A stretch of 64,000 nt of DNA from Antechinus flavipes (Eukaryota): NCBI RefSeq assembly GCF_016432865.1, contig NC_067398.1, positions 654,968,001 to 655,032,000 on the forward strand. Direction: 5' to 3'. Of this stretch, positions 12,401 through 59,800 are shown one piece after another. Position numbers and translations under genes: made by a program. The notes under the pieces were generated by a model. It saw only the letters and a program-made list of their open reading frames with translations, ran no database searches and was not told the DNA's origin. Each line of letters opens with the position of its first letter. The first letter of the stretch is position 1.

Positions 12401-14029
12401 GGAGACCGCTATGTCTTGAATCTCTGGCTTTGGGGTTCTCCAGTCTCGTTTTCTTCTCTGGCATCTGTCTTGGTGCCTGGTACCGGGGACGATCCCTGGG
12501 TCCTGGAAGAGTTCAGGAATTCTCCGGTGAAAGCACCTGGCTCGTTTCCTCTCTAGGACAACTCTTTTACGTGCTCCAACTCCCTTCTCCCATCCTTCCT
12601 GCTTTATGACTTCGGACAGAACAGTTAACATGCCTGGGTCTGAGATCCCTCATGCGAAAAAGGAGGAATCTCTAAGGCCTCTCTTCCACTGTCTCTGACT
12701 CCGTTACCCTGCAGATGCAGGGGCACTCTAGGTACTACAGCGCATGGTACCTCTCCCAGACTGGCCTTCCAAGTTCCCTGGTTTGTTTTCTTCTAGATTA
12801 AGTGGAGGAAGTGACTGCAGATTCCTTGGCACACACTCACAGCCTTGCCTTCCCCAAGCCCTTCTCTCTTCCTGCCTCCATCTCACCCCGGGCTGTTTCT
12901 GCTCCCAGCTTCCTAAAACCCTCCTCTTCTCTTCCCCGCCCCCCTCCCCAGCAGGCAGGTGCAGAAGGTGGCTGGCATTTTGTTTGTTTTCTGGGTTGTG
13001 CCCTCACGCTGGGAGATCCAAAGAGCCATGATTCCCCCAATTGCTGCCATCTATCAAGTATCTCAAACATTCCAGAGTTTAGGAAATAGGGGAGGATGGG
13101 AACAGTAAACACAAAGACCTAAGGGAGAACGAATTGGCCGTTGTTGCTCACCCTTAGTGAGGACAGCCAGAATGGGGGAGGGAATTAGAGTGATTAGGTT
13201 GCCTGGGACTCCTCGTGGCACCTCTAGATATGAGGATCTTGGATTTAGGCTCCTGGGCAAGTGGGAAGTGGCAGTGCTTGGGGAGATGAATTAGAAGAAC
13301 AGGTCTTGCTGGAATTTCCATTGTTTGGGGCACAAGAAGGAACCGGGAACTTAGATTCTGAGGAATATGGCCCTCATCCCTAAAGTTGGAGGGAGTACAG
13401 AGAAAAGAGCAATATGAAGTCAAAGATCCTGAAACCGAATCCTTGCTTTGCTGTGTAACTTTAGATAAAGATCTCCCTTGCCTCAGTTTTCATCTCTCCA
13501 AAATAAAAGAAGTTCTAAGTCATGATCCTATGAACACCCCTGGATGCCCAGGCTTTGCAGCCTAAGTCCAAGGAAAGCCCTTCGCTTTCCTGGGACTCTC
13601 CTAGGTTTAAAAGAAGGATCCTGAAGGGTATCGCCTAGGGTGGGACAAGGGATCAAGGACCCTACTTGCTCCAATGAAAGGATTGTTATGATAAGAATGA
13701 GGGAGGGCAGGGAAAAGACACTCTTCTATCCTACCCAGGGCTCAAGGCCTTTGCCTTCATTCTTTCCACAAATATTTCTCAAAACTAGGACGCCCTACTC
13801 GCAGCATGGGGGGAGGGAGGAACGGACCAGGATGAAAGAATGAGCTCAGTCCCAGGCTGGGAGTTCCCAATCACCCAAGGGAGTTAAGAAAGATTCAAAA
13901 ATAATTAAAATATAAGGCAGGATGCTGTCCAAGCGGGTTACCGTCCCTCCCCCCAGATCACCGCTGCAGTCAGCTTAGGTGTCCAGGGTTTACAGAACCT
14001 TGGGGACTCGGCACAGGATAGAAGCAAGA

Positions 14030-14370
14030 ACACGTGGTTCCCGCCCCTCTACCTCCGCCCGCACGGAAGCTAGTGGAGGTGAGGCACCTGCGCGTGCACA
14101 TGCGCATGACGAACTCAGTTCATCGCTCAGTTTCACGCCCCTTCCCCGAGAGCGCCGGTAACTACATCCCCCGCGATCCTCTGCGCCTCGAGCCGCAGCA
14201 CTTCCGTCTGGGATTGTAAACAGCGGTGAGTCCAAGTTGGGCCCAGAGCCCCCGCGGCGGCGGAGGGACGATGGCGGGGCTCCGCCTGTCCGGGGTCTCT
14301 GGAGCTGAAACGGACGCCGGGGCCTGGGAGCCTAGAAGGAGGGGCCTCGGCCGCCTCTGAGTGGACCGGG
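14030..14370. promoter_or_regulatory. CpG-island promoter of the RNF11-like gene (possibly bidirectional)
   Basis: NRF1-like tgcgcgtgcacatgcgcatg (about 14089-14108), ETS cores on both strands, and ZNF143-like aactacatcccc (about 14160) and ctgggattgta (about 14208). Confidence 0.6.
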
Positions 14371-14376
14371 CCAGGC

Positions 14377-16576
14377 ATGGGGAATTGCCTGTCTTCTCAG
14401 CGGTCCGGCATCAGGGCTGGGGACGAGGTGGGGACCGGAGCCACAGACAATCTGTCGTTGCTCAACGACTCTGGGGAAGGAAGCGGCTTCCCCGGGGACC
14501 CGCCGCCTCCCCCACCTTCCCAGAGGGCGGGCACCCCGCTGGACAGGCCAGGCTAGGAATCGAAGAACCGGGGCATCTGCCACCCGCCGCGACCCAGAGA
14601 GGCAGGGAAGGGCTGAGCACAGAAGAACCCGGCCCTCTGCCATCACCCCCAGGGCCCCGGAGAGGCAGGGCAGGACTGGGTCAGGGGATCCCTGTGTCCG
14701 CTATCACCCCCGAGAGACCAGGCAGAGCTTTGTTCTAAAGAACTCCGGCAACTGCTATTGCCCATCCCCTGCCCCAGAGAAGCAGAGCAGGACTGGCAAC
14801 AGGGACCAACCCCCTAGTTCCCCAGAAAAACAAGGCAGGGCCAAGCATAGGGAGCCCCAAGCATCTCACCCATCACCCCCAGAGATGGGGGACTGGGCTG
14901 GGCACCACCCCGCCCTCCAGGGAGGGGCAGGCAGAACTGGGGACAGAAGAACCTCAGCTGTCCACTTCCGCAACCCTGAGGATCAGGCTGTACTGTAGTC
15001 AGAGGAAGCCTTTGGAATCTACTCTTTTCATGCTACAGAGTGAAGGACGTGATAGAACAGAAGGGAAAAGGAAGAGAACTGGGTTGGGAAGGGGGGACTT
15101 TGGAATTTACCAAGCCAGACAAGGTCGGGACTGGGATTAGGGGGACTGACTCTAGAAATCCCAAAACAAGAGAAGCACAGAAGCCCTCCAATTGAATAAG
15201 CTCATTAGGCAGGAGGAGTAAGGATTCAGAAAGACCTGTTTAAATTCTCTCTGCCAGTTACCAGCCCTGTGAACTTTGCCAAGTCTGTTTCCCGGTTTTC
15301 CTCTATGGAAAATGAAAGTGTCGGTTTAAATGATCTCTCAGGCCTTTCCAGCTCGAGGTCCTATGGTCAGACCCAGCGATGGGGGAGTGTATTGCAGTCA
15401 GCAGGACAGTAGTGAACATAGAGGAATGAGGTCTTGGTCCCATTCTGAAGTGAGCATTGGAGTTTGTGAATATTAGGATTCCTAGGGAACAGTAGAAGAG
15501 GTGCAAAGGGTACAGGGTTCATAGATCCTTTAAAGCAGACCTCAAGCTAGACCCACTTGAAGCCCCACAGGGAACTAGACACAGGCAGGTTGAAAGAGAA
15601 GTCCCAGAGACAAGTTGCCATGTATATCCTGTCCCCATCCCCCAGGGACGGGAGCCAATCCCAGTGTACCACCCATCTCCAAGCCAGAGCCGACTGGCCG
15701 CACAGCTCACAGAGGAAGAGCAGATCCTCATCGCCCAGAGAATTGGCTTCATCCAGCACCTGCCCAAGGGCATCTTCGACCCTGGCTCTGAGGGGTCAGA
15801 AAAGAAAATGAAAGAGTAAGGGTGGGGAACAGGATGAGGATACCCCAGGCACCTGAAGGGAATGTTGTCAGCTCGCAGCCTAGTCCTCCTGGGAGCTGCA
15901 ATCTGAGGTTGCTCAGTAGATGAGGCTCTCAATCTTTTTTTTTTTTTCTTTTTAGGAGGGAAGTCTGGGAAAACACCCAGGCCCCGAGACATACCCATGT
16001 TGTTCTTGACCATATCCTTGAGCTCAATCCCAACTGGGTTCTCTTTGGAGTTCATCATCTAAATTCACTCCAGCCCCACCCCACCCCTCAAGTTTGACAG
16101 CTTCAAGGTTTGGGGTCTGTCCCAAACTGTGAAATAAAAGGCAGGGCCAGGATCTTCTACTTTTCTGTTTTCTCCAGATTCCCAAGAGCAAGGCCAAGGT
16201 CTGCCATTCCTTGACTCCCCCAGGCTGAGATCCTTGAAGGCAGGCCCTAGTCTCTTCAGTCAACAGTATAGTTCAAGTCTGGGTACACAGTGGGAGGCTT
16301 CTATGGCAATCAGAGCCGAAATGTTGGGCATGGAGGGGGTGGGTTGTGGATGGGTGAAGAGGGTGAGAACTGGTGCTACATTCATCCATCCCTGGTCCCT
16401 GCAGGTGTGTGATCTGCATGTTGGACTTTGTGTATGGGGATGCCATACGCTTCTTGCCATGCCTGCACACCTACCACGTCCACTGCATTGATGACTGGCT
16501 CATGCGCTCCCTCACATGTCCCTCTTGCATGGAGCCAGTGGACACAGCCCTGCTTTCCTCCTATGAGACAAGCTGA
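14377..16576 (+). CDS. RING finger protein 11-like (RNF11 paralogue, RING-H2 E3-ligase family), 3 coding exons
   Basis: Exon 1 starts at ATG 14377 (MGNCLSSQ...DNLSLLNDS...GDPPPPPPSQ); donor probably GAG|gtgggg at 14427. Exon 2 is 15646-15815 (170 nt, GREPIPVYHPSPSQSRLAAQLTEEEQILIAQRIGFIQHLPKGIFDPGSEGSEKKMKE). Exon 3 is 16405-16576 (172 nt, CVICMLDFVYGDAIRFLPCLHTYHVHCIDDWLMRSLTCPSCMEPVDTALLSSYETS*). All 8 RING-H2 ligands are intact. Confidence 0.88.
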
Positions 16577-17755
16577 ATATGGAGCCTGGCAGCCAACATA
16601 TCCCCCAGGCCTACTCAGGTGAGTCCCAGGGGGAAAGCAGCAGCCACTGCAGCTAGACATTTTTCACATTTGGGGAACATACCAAAGAGTGCCAAAGACA
16701 GACTTGGCGCCCACTCAAGAGATGGTGGCTTCATGGGTGTCCTGGCCTGAGGCAGGCCAAGTGCACATTAAGTCCTCCCTAGCTCAGTTTGACTTTTTTG
16801 GGGTTAAGTAACTAGTTTCCTCCCCCATCCCATCATGGACTTTTTTACTGCTGAATTTTTAAAGATCCTGAAAACTAATCTTTCTCACCCCAATAACATT
16901 GAGTCCTGAAGCCCCAGTACCTGAGCTGCTTCTAAAGGTGATGGAAGAAAAATCTTTTTAAATCCTGATTCCAGGAATTATGTCCACTGTGGCTGAAGGC
17001 CAGTAGGATTGGGGTGGTAAGGGTATGGGAGGAACAGATTACCTTGGTCCCCTCTCTGCTTGGGCTTTTGCTGGTGAGACAATGATAATCAGAAAACTTT
17101 TATTAACAAGCTTGATATTTTGGATCTTGTAACCTGCCCCTATACATCTGGTGATGTGAGAAGGGACCTTTAGTCTCTCTTATTCTACCTCACTTCGACC
17201 AGACATACCTTTTTGGGTCAGAATCCTGGTCCCTCCCAAGCTGGGTCAACTTTGGTCAGTCAGAATATCTACTCTGTTCTTTCATAATCCTGAAAACTGG
17301 GCAGATAGGATTGGGATATTCATCTGTCCTTCCCTCACTCCCTGGACAGGTTGAATCTTGCTTGCCTTAAAGCCCCTGGTTTAGTACTGAGGACAGTGGG
17401 GTCATGTATGACCTGCTTTGGGGAACAGGGGTCCTTAGGTTTGGGTTTATTTTTTAAGCTAAACTAATTCTGTGGAGCAGGGATGCAGAGAGGGAAGCAG
17501 CATGACATGATTTCACACATAATGGCTCACCAGAGGAGGAACTACTGCTTTCAACATAGACGAGACCCTCTCCCCAATCCCAGGGTATAGCCCTCCTTTC
17601 TGCTGGCAGGGGCTCTTGTCTAGTCACTTTGGGTATTCCCAGGCTAACCCCAATGTAGGGGAAGAGTGACTAGAGAGGAGCTTCATATATGATTATCTCT
17701 GGGCTATTTCCAGTAGAAGAGATGAACTGGGCCCCTGATCATGTAAAAGATAAGC

Positions 17756-17777
17756 AATAAAATGTGTTGCAAATAAA
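17756..17777 (+). terminator. Tandem AATAAA poly(A) signals of the RNF11-like gene
   Basis: AATAAA at 17756-17761 and 17772-17777, followed by GU-rich ctgtgctgtttg. Confidence 0.6.
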
Positions 17778-18516
17778 ATGGGACCCCCTGTGCTGTTTGC
17801 AATGGGAATCAGAATTGGAGAAAACCTTCAGGGGCATTCAGTCCCTACTGTTGTATCAGATCCAAAGGAACAAGATTAAGCCCAAAATGAATTGAGAATC
17901 CAAATCCTAATGGTTTCCTAAGAAGAGATGATCACAGCCCATTCTAAGCATGATACTTGTACAGGGATATCTTGGAAGACCACAATTTGGCTCACTCCAA
18001 ACAGTGGATAGAGTTACTCTTCACTTCTGAGCACTTCTGTAAAGACTAGGATCTGAGCTTAGTACAACACCCTGCAAGATCCTATCTTCTTATCCCATTA
18101 TTTTCCTGATGAACCTGGGGCAGAGCTCAAGAAAACTTAGGCCTCAAATCCACAGCCTGGTGAAAGCTATTTAGGATGCGGATTCCCATAGGGCCTAGAG
18201 CACTCCCAGAAAACAGCTGCCAGGGCACCAAGTTATCAGCAGACTTGATTCTCCCGGGGCCTAGCAGTTAAGAAATGAAAGAATAGCTAATCAAGGTGTT
18301 TTCTGGATTCAAATCCAGACTTTTTGCCTCTTGTAAAAGTGTGACCTTAAGCAAGTCACTTGAATCTTTTACAGAGTTTCCTAATTGATAAGATGGGCAC
18401 TAAGGTCCCTTCCAAGCTCAACATTTATGAGCCTGTGATCTCAAGGCTGAGACTCCAAGCAGGGGTCAGAAGCTGCCTCCAGAAGGAACACATACAGGCA
18501 GCTCTTAGGTCACTTT

Positions 18517-54274: not shown

Positions 54275-54655
54275 GAGAGAGGGAGAGAGAGACAGACAGA
54301 CAGACAGAGGCAGANNNNNNNNNNNNNNNNNNNNNNNNNNNNNNNNNNNNNNNNNNNNNNNNNNNNNNNNNNNNNNNNNNNNNNNNNNNNNNNNNNNNNN
54401 NNNNNNNNNNNNNNNNNNNNNNNNNNNNNNNNNNNNNNNNNNNNNNNNNNNNNNNNNNNNNNNNNNNNNNNNNNNNNNNNNNNNNNNNNNNNNNNNNNNN
54501 NNNNNNGAGAGAGACAGACAGACAGAGGCAGAGAGAGAGAGACAGAGACAGAGAGGAGAGAGAGAGACAGAGAGCGGAGAGAGAGACAGAGACAGAGAGA
54601 GACAGAGAGACAGACACGAGACACGAGAGACAGAGAGGGAGAGGGGATAGAAAAA
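54275..54655. repeat. (GA/GACA)n microsatellite spanning an assembly gap
   Basis: Purine-rich GAGA/GACA repeats on both sides of 192 N (54315-54506). Confidence 0.9.
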
Positions 54656-56842: not shown

Positions 56843-59800
56843 ATGACCGTGACGTACACAGCCCGCGTAGCAAATGCTCGCTTCGGGGGGTTCTCCAAGC
56901 TGCTGCTGCTTTGGCGGGGAAGCATTTACAAATTACTCTATCGAGAGGTGCTGGTCTTCCTCGGGGGGTACCTGGTCCTGAGCGCCATCTATCGGTGAGG
57001 ACAGGCCTTGGGTCAAGAGGATGGGATACAGGGGAATCTGGAGGGTGGAGGGATGGAGTGGGATGGAAACTCTCCGAGAGATGAGGGTCTCCAGTGCAAA
57101 GAGACGGTCACGGGGGGAGAGAGGAGGTGGTGCTCAGGGAGAGATGTGCCTCTAACTTTCCCCGCTCCACCCACCCAGCTTTATCCTGACGGAAGACCAA
57201 AGACCCTACTTCGAGAAATTAGTCATGTACTGCGACCAGTACGCCAACCTCATTCCTGTCTCTTTTGTGCTGGGTATGAAATCACTCCCTCTCATCTCAA
57301 CCCCAACCTCGGGACGCACTTAGCTTTCCTTACCCCTCAGCCCAAGCACCCTTCAGTCCTAGAACTCCTATTCCCAGGCAACCCCTAGAGCTCCCCACCG
57401 CCCCCCGACTTATCCCATGCAGACCTAGAACCTTCAATTCTATAGTCCGGAGCCTTAACCTCAGCTTCTCCATTTCGTCCGGATCATTTGTGCTGAGCCC
57501 CTCCCTAACCTAGACCTTTTACAGCCCTCAGTCGCTACTAGGGACACCAGGAACTTCCTTTTAACCCCTTTCAGAACTCAGACCCAAGAATTTATCCAGG
57601 GCAGACCCTGTGCTAGTTCGCAATGAAACAACTCCTGCCTTGAAGGAACTATTGGAGGAAGGGAGGAATGTAAACATCAAAATAAATAGAAACGCTTCCT
57701 AGCTGTGTGACCCTGGGAAAGTCGTTTAATCNNNNNNNNNNNNNNNNNNNNNNNNNNNNNNNNNNNNNNNNNNNNNNNNNNNNNNNNNNNNNNNNNNNNN
57801 NNNNNNNNNNNNNNNNNNNNNNNNNNNNNNNNNNNNNNNNNNNNNNNNNNNNNNNNNNNNNNNNNNNNNNNNNNNNNNNNNNNNNNNNNNNNNNNNNNNN
57901 NNNNNNNNNNNNNNNNNNNNNNNNNNNNNNNNNNNNNNNNNNNNNNNNNNNNNNNNNNNNNNNNNNNNNNNNNNNNNNNNNNNNNNNNNNNNNNNNNNNN
58001 NNNNNNNNNNNNNNNNNNNNNNNNNNNNNNNNNNNNNNNNNNNNNNNNNNNNNNNNNNNNNNNNNNNNNNNNNNNNNNNNNTATCAAAATAAGTAGAAAA
58101 AGATATATAGATACAAAAATGATGGAGAGGGAAAGACACTGGAGAGATTCAAAATGCACTTAAGCAGAGCTTTGAAAAGGGTTAGGGATTCTGAGAGACT
58201 GTAGGTGAAAAGGGAGGATATTTATTCTAGGCAAAGCAGACAATGAATGCAAAGTCCCTGAGGTGGAAATGGAGTATCTAGTCCAAAAGAACAACAAATA
58301 GGACAGTTTGACTGGACTGCTCGGTGCTTGAAGGAAAACAAGATGAAATATGCTTGAAAAAGTAACTTGGGAAGGTTTTTACATGCCAAATAGAGAAATT
58401 TGTATGTTATCTGAGAGACAAGAGGGAACCACTGGAGTTGGTGTAGTGGTGCTGGTGGGGGATTTGTGGATTAGGAATATGCACTTGGCAAGGAAAGACT
58501 GGAGAGGAGGGGAGGTATGACACAATTGGTAATTGGGCAATGATTGCAGTCAGGCAAGGGATGATGAGGTTTTCACTTATGACAAAGGTGATATAAAGTG
58601 ATGGATGTGAAATGTATTGTGAAGACAGAATAAGATTTGACAACTGATTGGATATAAGAAATGAGGGATAGTGAGGAATCTAGGATGACTCTAAATTTGG
58701 AAAGTTGGTTGCCCAGAAAGATGATGGCATCCTCAAGAGAAATAGAAGGAAGAGTTTGGGGGTTTGAAAATTAGTTTTCTTGTGGGATTATGAAGCTTGA
58801 GATGTCTATGGAACGCGTGGAACTGGATTTAATGAAGACACAGCTAGATTTATGTAGATGTAAGAGATATTGCACAGAGATGGTTGTTGATGAGCTCATC
58901 AAGACAGGGTAGAGAAAGCAAATGGTCCAGAACAGAACTCTGGGGTAGTGTACACCCAGGTATTAAGAGACCATAGATCTCTATGTATCAGAGGAGACTC
59001 AGGACTGGTCAGAAAAGTAGGAAAAGAACCAAAAGAGAAGTCTCATGAAAACTCAAGGTAGAAACTTTTTTTTTTTTTTGGAGGCAATTGGGGTTAAGTG
59101 ACTTGCACTGGTGCTCTATTCACTACACCAACTAGCTATCCCTTAATTTTTTTTTTAAAGGTGGAAACTCTTAACCTGAGGATAGATTTCAGGGGATCTA
59201 TGGAACATGGATGGGGCCAAAATTTTCTCAATGAGCACAAAAGATTTATCTGAGAAGGGACCCATGAGTTTCATTAAACTGCCAAAGGGATACATAACAC
59301 AAAAAAAGATCCCTGGTGTGGAAAGTGTGGTCAATATTTTCAAATTATGGAAAGAGTTCAAGAAAGAAAAGGACAGAGAAAAGGATTTCCAATGTGACAA
59401 TTAAAAGGGTTTATAATCTTGAGAAGTAAGTGGGAATAGACCAAAGCATAGACACCTTTGTTCTAGGAGCTTGGCTATCAGTCAAGAAATGTTAATTAAG
59501 AGCTTCTAGTGTGCTGGGCACTATGCTAAGAGCTAGAGATACAAAAAGAAGCAGAGGACAATTCTTGCCTGGAATCTTTTTGGGGGGAATTACCAGGAGG
59601 CCAGTGTCCTTTTGGATAGAAAAAATGATAGACAATAAAAGCTGGAACGAAAAGAAAAGGCTGGCTTATGAAAGGCTTTGAATGCCAAACAAAGCATTTG
59701 GATTTGATCTTGAAGGTGTTATAGAGTCACTAGAGTTTACTGAATAAACGGGTGATTTGAGAAGGTCATTTTGATAGCTGAGTGGAGGATGGATGCAGTG

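Follow-up and report, generated by a model that had tools for sequence, protein, structure and literature searches.

The stretch of DNA analysed here is a window of 64,000 nt from the genome of Antechinus flavipes, and all coordinates given below are positions in this window. It holds a gene for a small RING finger protein, all parts of which lie on the + strand. By its signature residues, its place in the tree and its synteny, the gene is the TNPO2-linked paralogue of RNF11, named 'RNF11-like' in RefSeq and of the 'rnf11a' type in coelacanth and fish. Positions 14377–14427 (exon 1), 15646–15815 (exon 2) and 16405–16576 (coding part of exon 3) join to give an open frame of 130 codons, and the spliced translation is an exact match to the RefSeq protein XP_051827575.1 (Antechinus flavipes, 130 aa). 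Window positions 13377–17576 are identical over 4200 bases to positions 654,981,377–654,985,576 of CM028217.1 in GCA_016432865.2. The RefSeq protein of the devil, Sarcophilus harrisii (XP_012397555.1), is also of 130 aa, whereas the models of all eight other marsupials compared (Monodelphis, Gracilinanus, Dromiciops, koala, wombat, brushtail possum, sugar glider and tammar) have 163–173 aa. The difference lies at the end of the first coding exon, which is the main subject of this report.

The frame of exon 1 opens with the ATG at 14377 (MGNCLSSQRSGIRAGDEVGTGATDNLSLLNDSGEGSGFPGDPPPPPPSQRAGTPLDRPG) and, when the unspliced exon is read through, is closed by a TAG at 14554–14556. After the codon CAG at 14521–14523, Antechinus has AGGGCG. 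When all GT and GC dinucleotides of this frame were checked, a single phase-0 GT came up, GAG/GTGGGG, with the GT at 14428–14429 (the slash marks the splice boundary), together with a phase-0 GC at 14527, AGG/GCGGGC. The frame, its TAG, the AGGGCG after CAG, the sole in-phase GT and a product of 130 aa had all been described in the original prediction, and our re-reading of the sequence agrees with that description. The same prediction had placed the ancestral exon–intron junction after the CAG that ends at 14523; the loss of GT from the old donor holds, but the alignment with other marsupials puts the junction three bases further on, after AGG at 14524–14526. The retained coding part of exon 1 (14377–14427, 17 codons, MGNCLSSQRSGIRAGDE), which carries the Gly2 and Cys4 acylation signature, is thus followed by a derived donor, GTGGGG (14428–14433), in which T 14429 is the middle base of what was codon 18 (GTG). 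From 14428 to 14526 extends an intronised former segment of exon 1, 33 codons in length (VGTGATDNLSLLNDSGEGSGFPGDPPPPPPSQR), with the remnants of a dileucine motif, DNLSLL (D24–N25 at 14446–14451), and of a PPxY motif, PPPS (S48 codon TCC, 14518–14520). The remnant of the ancestral donor, GCGGGC in Antechinus as aligned with devil, koala and Dromiciops, occupies 14527–14532. Upstream of the ATG, the exon-1 5' untranslated region (UTR) spans 14210–14376, as judged from an uninterrupted RNA contig covering 14210–14428, so that the transcript start at 14210 is a lower bound.

Splicing was followed in the contigs of four public runs aligned to window positions 13900–17100; such contigs drop rare variants and give no isoform quantities. 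Run X21 is from the same organism and a separate sample; its library type is not recorded, and it was treated as RNA because of its spliced joints. Run X1 is labelled as RNA and comes from a dasyurid about 94% alike, and at 14356, 14365 and 14385 it departs from the window in the same way as the devil locus does. The X21 contigs join exon 1 to exon 2 at 14427/15646, with GT..AG ends and a depth of 203 (contig joint 14425 to 15644, 'cut +2'), and exon 2 to exon 3 at 15815/16405, with a depth of 265. Both joints are also carried by X1. An unspliced X21 contig, 14399–15673, has a depth of 22 and shows no differences from the window. A 130-residue RING protein from the shortened exon 1 is expressed in antechinus. 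That the GAG/GT donor is in use and that 14428–14523 is now intronic had been put forward in the original prediction, and the RNA joints in two dasyurids, with which the two RefSeq models agree, bear this out. One other donor was considered and rejected: CGG/GTGAGT at about 14227, in the 5' UTR, is ruled out by the unbroken X21 contig 14210–14428, and koala has GA in that place.

Antechinus might make a long form as well, a protein of 163 aa spliced from AGG/GCGGGC at 14527, in which case the N-terminal region would be optional and not lost. Its old segment, unlike that of the devil, is in frame to 14526, GC–AG introns do exist, and a rare form could drop out of the contigs. However, no joint from 14523 or 14526 was seen in the contigs of either RNA run, which miss rare isoforms; GCGGGC fits only 3 of the 9 positions of the donor consensus; and a frameshift in the devil, described below, bars the long form there. 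A long form would in any case still carry PPPS and DNLSLL, which are not functional motifs. We regard such a dual output as improbable. Among the RNA contigs no other junction restoring a PPxY frame was seen, although rare isoforms would be missed in them.

An error of assembly or sequencing between 14505 and 14530, hiding a true sequence TAC CAG/GT and thus an existing long form, had also been named as an alternative in the original prediction. The region is GC-rich (65%) and repetitive in proline codons, and therefore error-prone. Yet a DNA-like contig of run X19, possibly the assembly's own source, covers 13900–17100 with zero differences, and the X21 contigs, from a different sample, likewise match the window exactly. 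Moreover, the devil assembly, which is independent, also reads TCC CAG AGG and differs only in having GT for GC at the old donor, and no spliced contig was found at that site. An error is therefore extremely improbable, and the alternative can be set aside.

The origin of the new donor was traced in a DNA alignment of Antechinus, devil, koala and Dromiciops; glider, opossum, wombat, tammar, possum and Gracilinanus were compared as proteins only. Codon 18 is GCG in koala and Dromiciops and GTG in devil and Antechinus, and all eight of the non-dasyurid marsupial proteins have Ala at this codon. Because the other marsupials have GCG or Ala and the dasyurids GTG, the new GT was made by a C-to-T change at a CpG in the ancestor of both dasyurids. 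The new donor sits within a marsupial insertion of 13–14 residues that follows MGNCLSSQ (RSGTxAGDEAGAG). At the old donor the sequence is GTGAGC in both koala and Dromiciops, GTGGGC in the devil and GCGGGC in Antechinus; its weakening at position +4 (GTGAGC to GTGGGC) is found in both dasyurids, and the loss of its GT is later and specific to Antechinus, since the devil keeps GT. From these comparisons the gain of the donor at codon 18 (GCG to GTG), common to both dasyurids only, was the deciding event.

The abandoned segment has since decayed in each lineage. In the devil it carries a 1-bp deletion (GGCTTCCCC to GGCTCCCC) that shifts the old frame, and the old donor of the devil is therefore no longer able to give an mRNA that encodes the RING domain. 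The dileucine remnant is DSLSLL in the devil and DNLSLL in Antechinus. Between these two species the skipped segment is 93.9% identical, with one indel, close to the 93.3% of the rest of intron 1, and identity rises to 98.2% in exon 2 and 99.4% in the coding part of exon 3. The skipped segment thus evolves as an intron in both dasyurid lineages. As the decay differs from one lineage to the other and the segment changes at the rate of an intron, the gain of the new donor and the weakening of the old one came first, and independent neutral decay followed. With a derived donor, its use in RNA and an intron-like skipped part, the case is one of splice-site shift, or partial intronisation.

One candidate cause for the loss of the old donor lay in the degenerate repeats, each of about 60 bp, with which intron 1 begins (14505–14960; CCCAGAGAGGCAGGGCAGGACTGG... 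/ CTCTGCCATCACCCCCAG; families D1–D8 of the repeat search) and which could have overwritten it from about 14505 onwards. This was rejected: the repeats occur in koala too, where GTGAGC is intact, and in the dasyurids the donor changed by point substitution. Tandem Repeats Finder (TRF) detects no array among the repeats at 14505–14960. An organism 99.4% alike (organism D, run X23) has a 21-bp insertion at 14902, within these repeats.

The two motifs of the skipped segment have a longer history. In turtles, squamates, coelacanth and cyprinids the proteins of this paralogue read MGNCLSSQAADDLSLLNDS...PPPYQ, and because they carry both DDLSLL and PPPY the two motifs are ancestral to the paralogue. 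At the tyrosine of PPxY, Monodelphis, Gracilinanus and wombat have Tyr, koala and possum Cys, Dromiciops His, glider Pro, and tammar and both dasyurids Ser (in the dasyurids in the genomic remnant, as TCC). Given the spread of these residues on the accepted marsupial tree, the tyrosine was lost independently at least four times. The second Asp of DDLSLL is likewise Asn in Dromiciops, possum and Antechinus, His in glider and Ser in devil. The changes from PPPY to PPPS and from DDISLL to DNLSLL that the original prediction read in the frame are indeed there, but they are not peculiar to dasyurids, for such decay recurs in other australidelphians that have the long exon. Between koala and Dromiciops, both of which keep that exon, the linker segment is 82.9% identical, intron 81.1% and exon 2 99.4%. 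The linker that bears the motifs is therefore only weakly constrained across Australidelphia, where its indels are all in frame, and the decay of the motifs may predate the splice shift.

The remainder of the protein is well kept. Exon 2 (15646–15815; joints 14427/15646 and 15815/16405) encodes GREPIPVYHP...KKMKE with a UIM-like stretch, EEEQILIAQRIG; it is entered in phase 0 and left in phase 2 at GA/GTAAGG, and its protein is 100% identical in Antechinus and devil. Exon 3 (16405–16618) encodes the RING-H2 domain and a C-terminal DTALL, ends its frame with TGA at 16574–16576, and runs on as a 3' UTR of 42 nt to a CAG/GTGAGT donor. The RING domain is recognised by Pfam (zf-RING_2, E = 3.1e-13, residues 74–115 of the 130-aa product), and all of its Cys and His residues are present. 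The N-terminal MGNCLSS, encoded at 14377–14397, stays in the spliced product and fits the MGxC signature predicted for myristoylation of Gly2 and palmitoylation of Cys4. The PPxY of the RNF11 family is missing from the 130-aa product, and its N-terminal DxxLL/DxxxLL is spliced out; the C-terminal DTALL fits the DxxLL pattern of the family's C-terminal acidic dileucine. The spliced frame is hence the product foreseen by the original prediction, one without the PPxY-like and N-terminal DxxLL-like stretch and with its acylation signature kept.

Exons 2 and 3 are under purifying selection. Over their 113 codons, omega by the method of Nei and Gojobori is 0.09 between Antechinus and devil (1 non-synonymous and 3 synonymous differences) and 0.14–0.24 from the dasyurids to koala and Dromiciops. 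On the dasyurid stem, 4 non-synonymous and 3 synonymous changes fell in these exons. The replacements comprise a T>A in RLATQ, an R>L and an L>F, both in EEEQIRIAQRIGLIQ, and an A>T in DAALL. In an alignment of 16 proteins, from shark to mammal and over both paralogues, three of these sites are otherwise invariant, and the L>F is also found in Monodelphis. No inner branch of the marsupial clade is longer than that of the dasyurids (0.032). The pattern fits a short burst of change around the splice shift, then purifying selection, with numbers too small for a test. Separately, the synonymous divergence (dS) of exons 2–3 between Antechinus and koala is 0.07, against about 21% mismatches in introns, and so low a value suggests constraint at the nucleotide level besides that on the protein.

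The changes on the stem, the long branch and the 33 codons lost from exon 1 are what one would expect if the paralogue were dying in dasyurids and the short frame were an accident of a cryptic donor. Early pseudogenisation of this kind, raised as an alternative in the original prediction, is nonetheless largely refuted. Two genera share an intact frame of 130 codons with an omega of 0.09 between them, the exons are 98–99% identical against 93–95% for introns, the Cys and His of the RING are complete, and in X21 the spliced mRNA has about 10 times the depth of the unspliced contig. A gene with an intact frame, such a low omega and spliced contigs does not qualify as a unitary pseudogene, and we consider it highly improbable that the locus is on its way to becoming one.

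Beyond the coding exons, the transcript has several further features. The donor CAG/GTGAGT at 16616–16624, 42 nt past the stop codon, is spliced to a non-coding exon 4 (17459–17790, 3' end approximate) with alternative acceptors at 17459 and 17481. Loose ends of X21 contigs at 16618/16619 match 17459–17486 and 17482–17507, and AG precedes both acceptors; AATAAA signals stand near 17756–17775, just before the end of the exon. A contig with the unspliced 3' UTR exists beside the form spliced to exon 4. An alternative exon within intron 2, 15961–16282, is joined to exon 3 in X21 at a depth of 47, against 265 for the main joint, and no ATG-initiated frame runs from this exon into the RING domain. 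The 5' UTR holds an upstream open reading frame of 29 codons (MAGLRLSGVSGAETDAGAWEPRRRGLGRL, 14270–14359) that ends 17 nt ahead of the main ATG; Antechinus, devil, koala and Dromiciops agree in where it starts, how long it is and where it stops. Between koala and Dromiciops the 5' UTR is more alike (91%) than the coding linker of exon 1 (83%). The repeats of about 60 bp in intron 1 are common to koala. Elsewhere in the window there are two runs of N, at 54315–54506 (192 bases) and 57732–58081 (350 bases).

The assignment of the gene to the paralogue comes from several comparisons. The marsupial 'RING finger protein 11-like' proteins were found by a word search with exon 2, and their members were taken from 90%-identity clusters. 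In the tree the gene belongs to the marsupial 'like' clade (100/99), which joins the squamate 'like' proteins, and not to the clade of canonical RNF11/11b (97/95). The signature MGNCLSSQ...LSLLNDS is common to the orthologues, and a gene for an importin-like protein of 899 aa, upstream and on the opposite strand, flanks the koala and glider copies. The databases disagree about the devil. The Ensembl/UniProt model A0A7N4PYS5 (145 aa) takes its N-terminus from the repeats of intron 1 (devil locus 1363–1458, about 14740–14834 in the window); it begins right after a stop without an ATG, meets exon 2 at a non-canonical AAG/GC and has no supporting RNA joint. It is probably a mis-model, and the RefSeq models of 130 aa, which fit the RNA, are right. 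A literature search for RNF11 in marsupials returned no paper on the 130-aa form, only RNF113B and unrelated matches. Already known are thus the 130-aa protein as an automated RefSeq prediction and the splice-site shift as an ordinary mechanism. What is new is the reconstruction of the event, its confirmation in RNA, its restriction to dasyurids and the finding that australidelphians have lost the PPxY tyrosine repeatedly.

The system closest to the dasyurid protein is canonical RNF11. Myristoylation of its Gly2 and palmitoylation of its Cys4 are required for membrane localisation, its DxxLL/DxxxLL (residues 11–16) binds GGA VHS domains and AP-2, and its PPxY is the main contact of the WW domains of the NEDD4 family (PMC7697665). 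A second acidic dileucine, 144-DAALL-148, which the original prediction did not mention, lies at its C-terminus, and mutants of its PY motif (Y40A and related) abolish NEDD4-family binding and stabilise the protein (PMC7697665). The human and mouse protein (154 aa) shares with the dasyurid one the MGNCL start, PVYHP...EEEQI.IAQRIG.IQHLPKG, the RING-H2 domain, the C-terminal DxxLL and the position of a phase-2 intron before CVICM. The dasyurid product differs in that it comes from a distinct, TNPO2-linked paralogue, has 130 and not 154 aa, and is without PPxY and the N-terminal DxxLL/DxxxLL. It resembles the PY mutants as an RNF11-type protein with no functional PPxY; unlike them it is a natural, lineage-fixed variant of a paralogue that also lacks the N-terminal dileucine and some 33 linker residues. 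The RNF11-like and rnf11a orthologues of other vertebrates share with the dasyurid gene the residues IFDPG, CML and LH.YHV of exons 2–3 and the N-terminal signature, which in full reads MGNCLSSQ...DDLSLLNDS. These orthologues (turtles, squamates, coelacanth, cyprinids and other marsupials) differ in having 153–173 aa and a whole exon 1; among them the sauropsid and fish members have lost neither DDLSLL nor PPPY, and only in the two dasyurids is there a splice at codon 17.

Partial intronisation and splice-site shift, in which exonic sequence is turned into intron, have been described before (PMC3002245, PMC2901347, PMC2740785). The dasyurid gene shares with such cases a donor made by point mutation within a coding exon, a downstream stretch that became intronic in phase, and the neutral decay of that stretch. 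It differs in that an existing intron was extended 5'-wards by 99 nt and no new intron arose, and in that the stretch removed had ancestrally held two defined short linear motifs.

Taken together, the evidence makes it very probable that a single C-to-T change created the new donor in the dasyurid ancestor and gave rise to a 130-aa paralogue that keeps its lipid anchor and lacks PPxY and the N-terminal dileucine. The course of events was then as follows. In the common ancestor of Antechinus and devil, a CpG transition turned codon 18 from GCG to GTG and so produced the phase-0 donor GAG/GTGGGG inside the marsupial-specific insertion, and in that same ancestor the old donor was weakened at +4 from GTGAGC to GTGGGC. 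Splicing shifted 99 nt upstream, making the final 33 codons of exon 1 part of the intron, and the abandoned codons decayed neutrally: the devil lost 1 bp, and in Antechinus the GT of the old donor turned into GC. Besides MGNCLSS, the protein retains the UIM-like helix, its RING-H2 domain and a DxxLL at the C-terminus. If it behaves like RNF11, it would be doubly acylated, anchored in the membrane and able to work with E2 enzymes, and it would not be recruited by, or ubiquitinated or turned over through, the WW domains of NEDD4-family HECT ligases. It would lack the N-terminal GGA/AP-2 sorting signal and depend for its sorting on acylation and the C-terminal dileucine. The data themselves establish how the gene is built and spliced, in what order the mutations fell and that exons 2–3 are under purifying selection; acylation, the loss of WW and GGA contacts and any effect on function are inferred. 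The suggestion of the original prediction that the protein is uncoupled from HECT ligases follows from the absence of the motif and is best worded in the same conditional way. The devil also has a canonical RNF11, which carries DDISLL and PPPPY, and the classical functions of RNF11 are therefore still covered.

Three points weigh against this account. All of the RNA support consists of assembled contigs, so that there may be a minor long isoform from the weak AGG/GC at 14527, which is in frame in Antechinus. The four amino-acid changes on the dasyurid stem could mean that constraint on the whole gene was relaxed at that time. And the tyrosine is already replaced in dasyurids as in five other australidelphians, so that the shift may have removed a stretch already without function and not itself have brought about any uncoupling.

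A broader view can be set beside this account, though we think it unlikely. The paralogue would have been freed of NEDD4-family control across Australidelphia by the repeated replacement of the tyrosine, at least four times (koala Cys, Dromiciops His, dasyurid Ser, and Cys, Pro and Ser in possum, glider and wallaby). Dasyurids would then have dropped the linker, with the four stem substitutions. The outcome would be a minimal RING-H2 ligase, neofunctionalised, stable and anchored in the membrane, that acts alongside a canonical RNF11 left as it was. Were this true, the marsupial genes would form a natural series of alleles in which the functions of the PY, dileucine and RING modules of RNF11 are separated.

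The origin of the dasyurid form by gain of a donor, which we favour, is a modest and tidy case of lineage-specific gene remodelling: a clean, datable shortening of a coding exon by one CpG transition, after which the abandoned segment decayed neutrally. Its value for annotation is small but real, as it bears on the RefSeq and Ensembl models of the devil gene. In work on TGF-beta, EGFR and NF-kB signalling, RNF11 figures as an adaptor, a substrate and an inhibitor of HECT ligases of the NEDD4 family, and almost all of this biology is credited to the PPxY together with the sorting signals. The marsupial paralogues provide a natural series in which PPPY is intact (opossum and wombat), its tyrosine is replaced (koala, possum, wallaby, glider and Dromiciops) or the whole linker is spliced out (dasyurids). 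Across this series the RING half is nearly frozen, so that those functions of an RNF11-type protein that do not need the PPxY become open to direct test.

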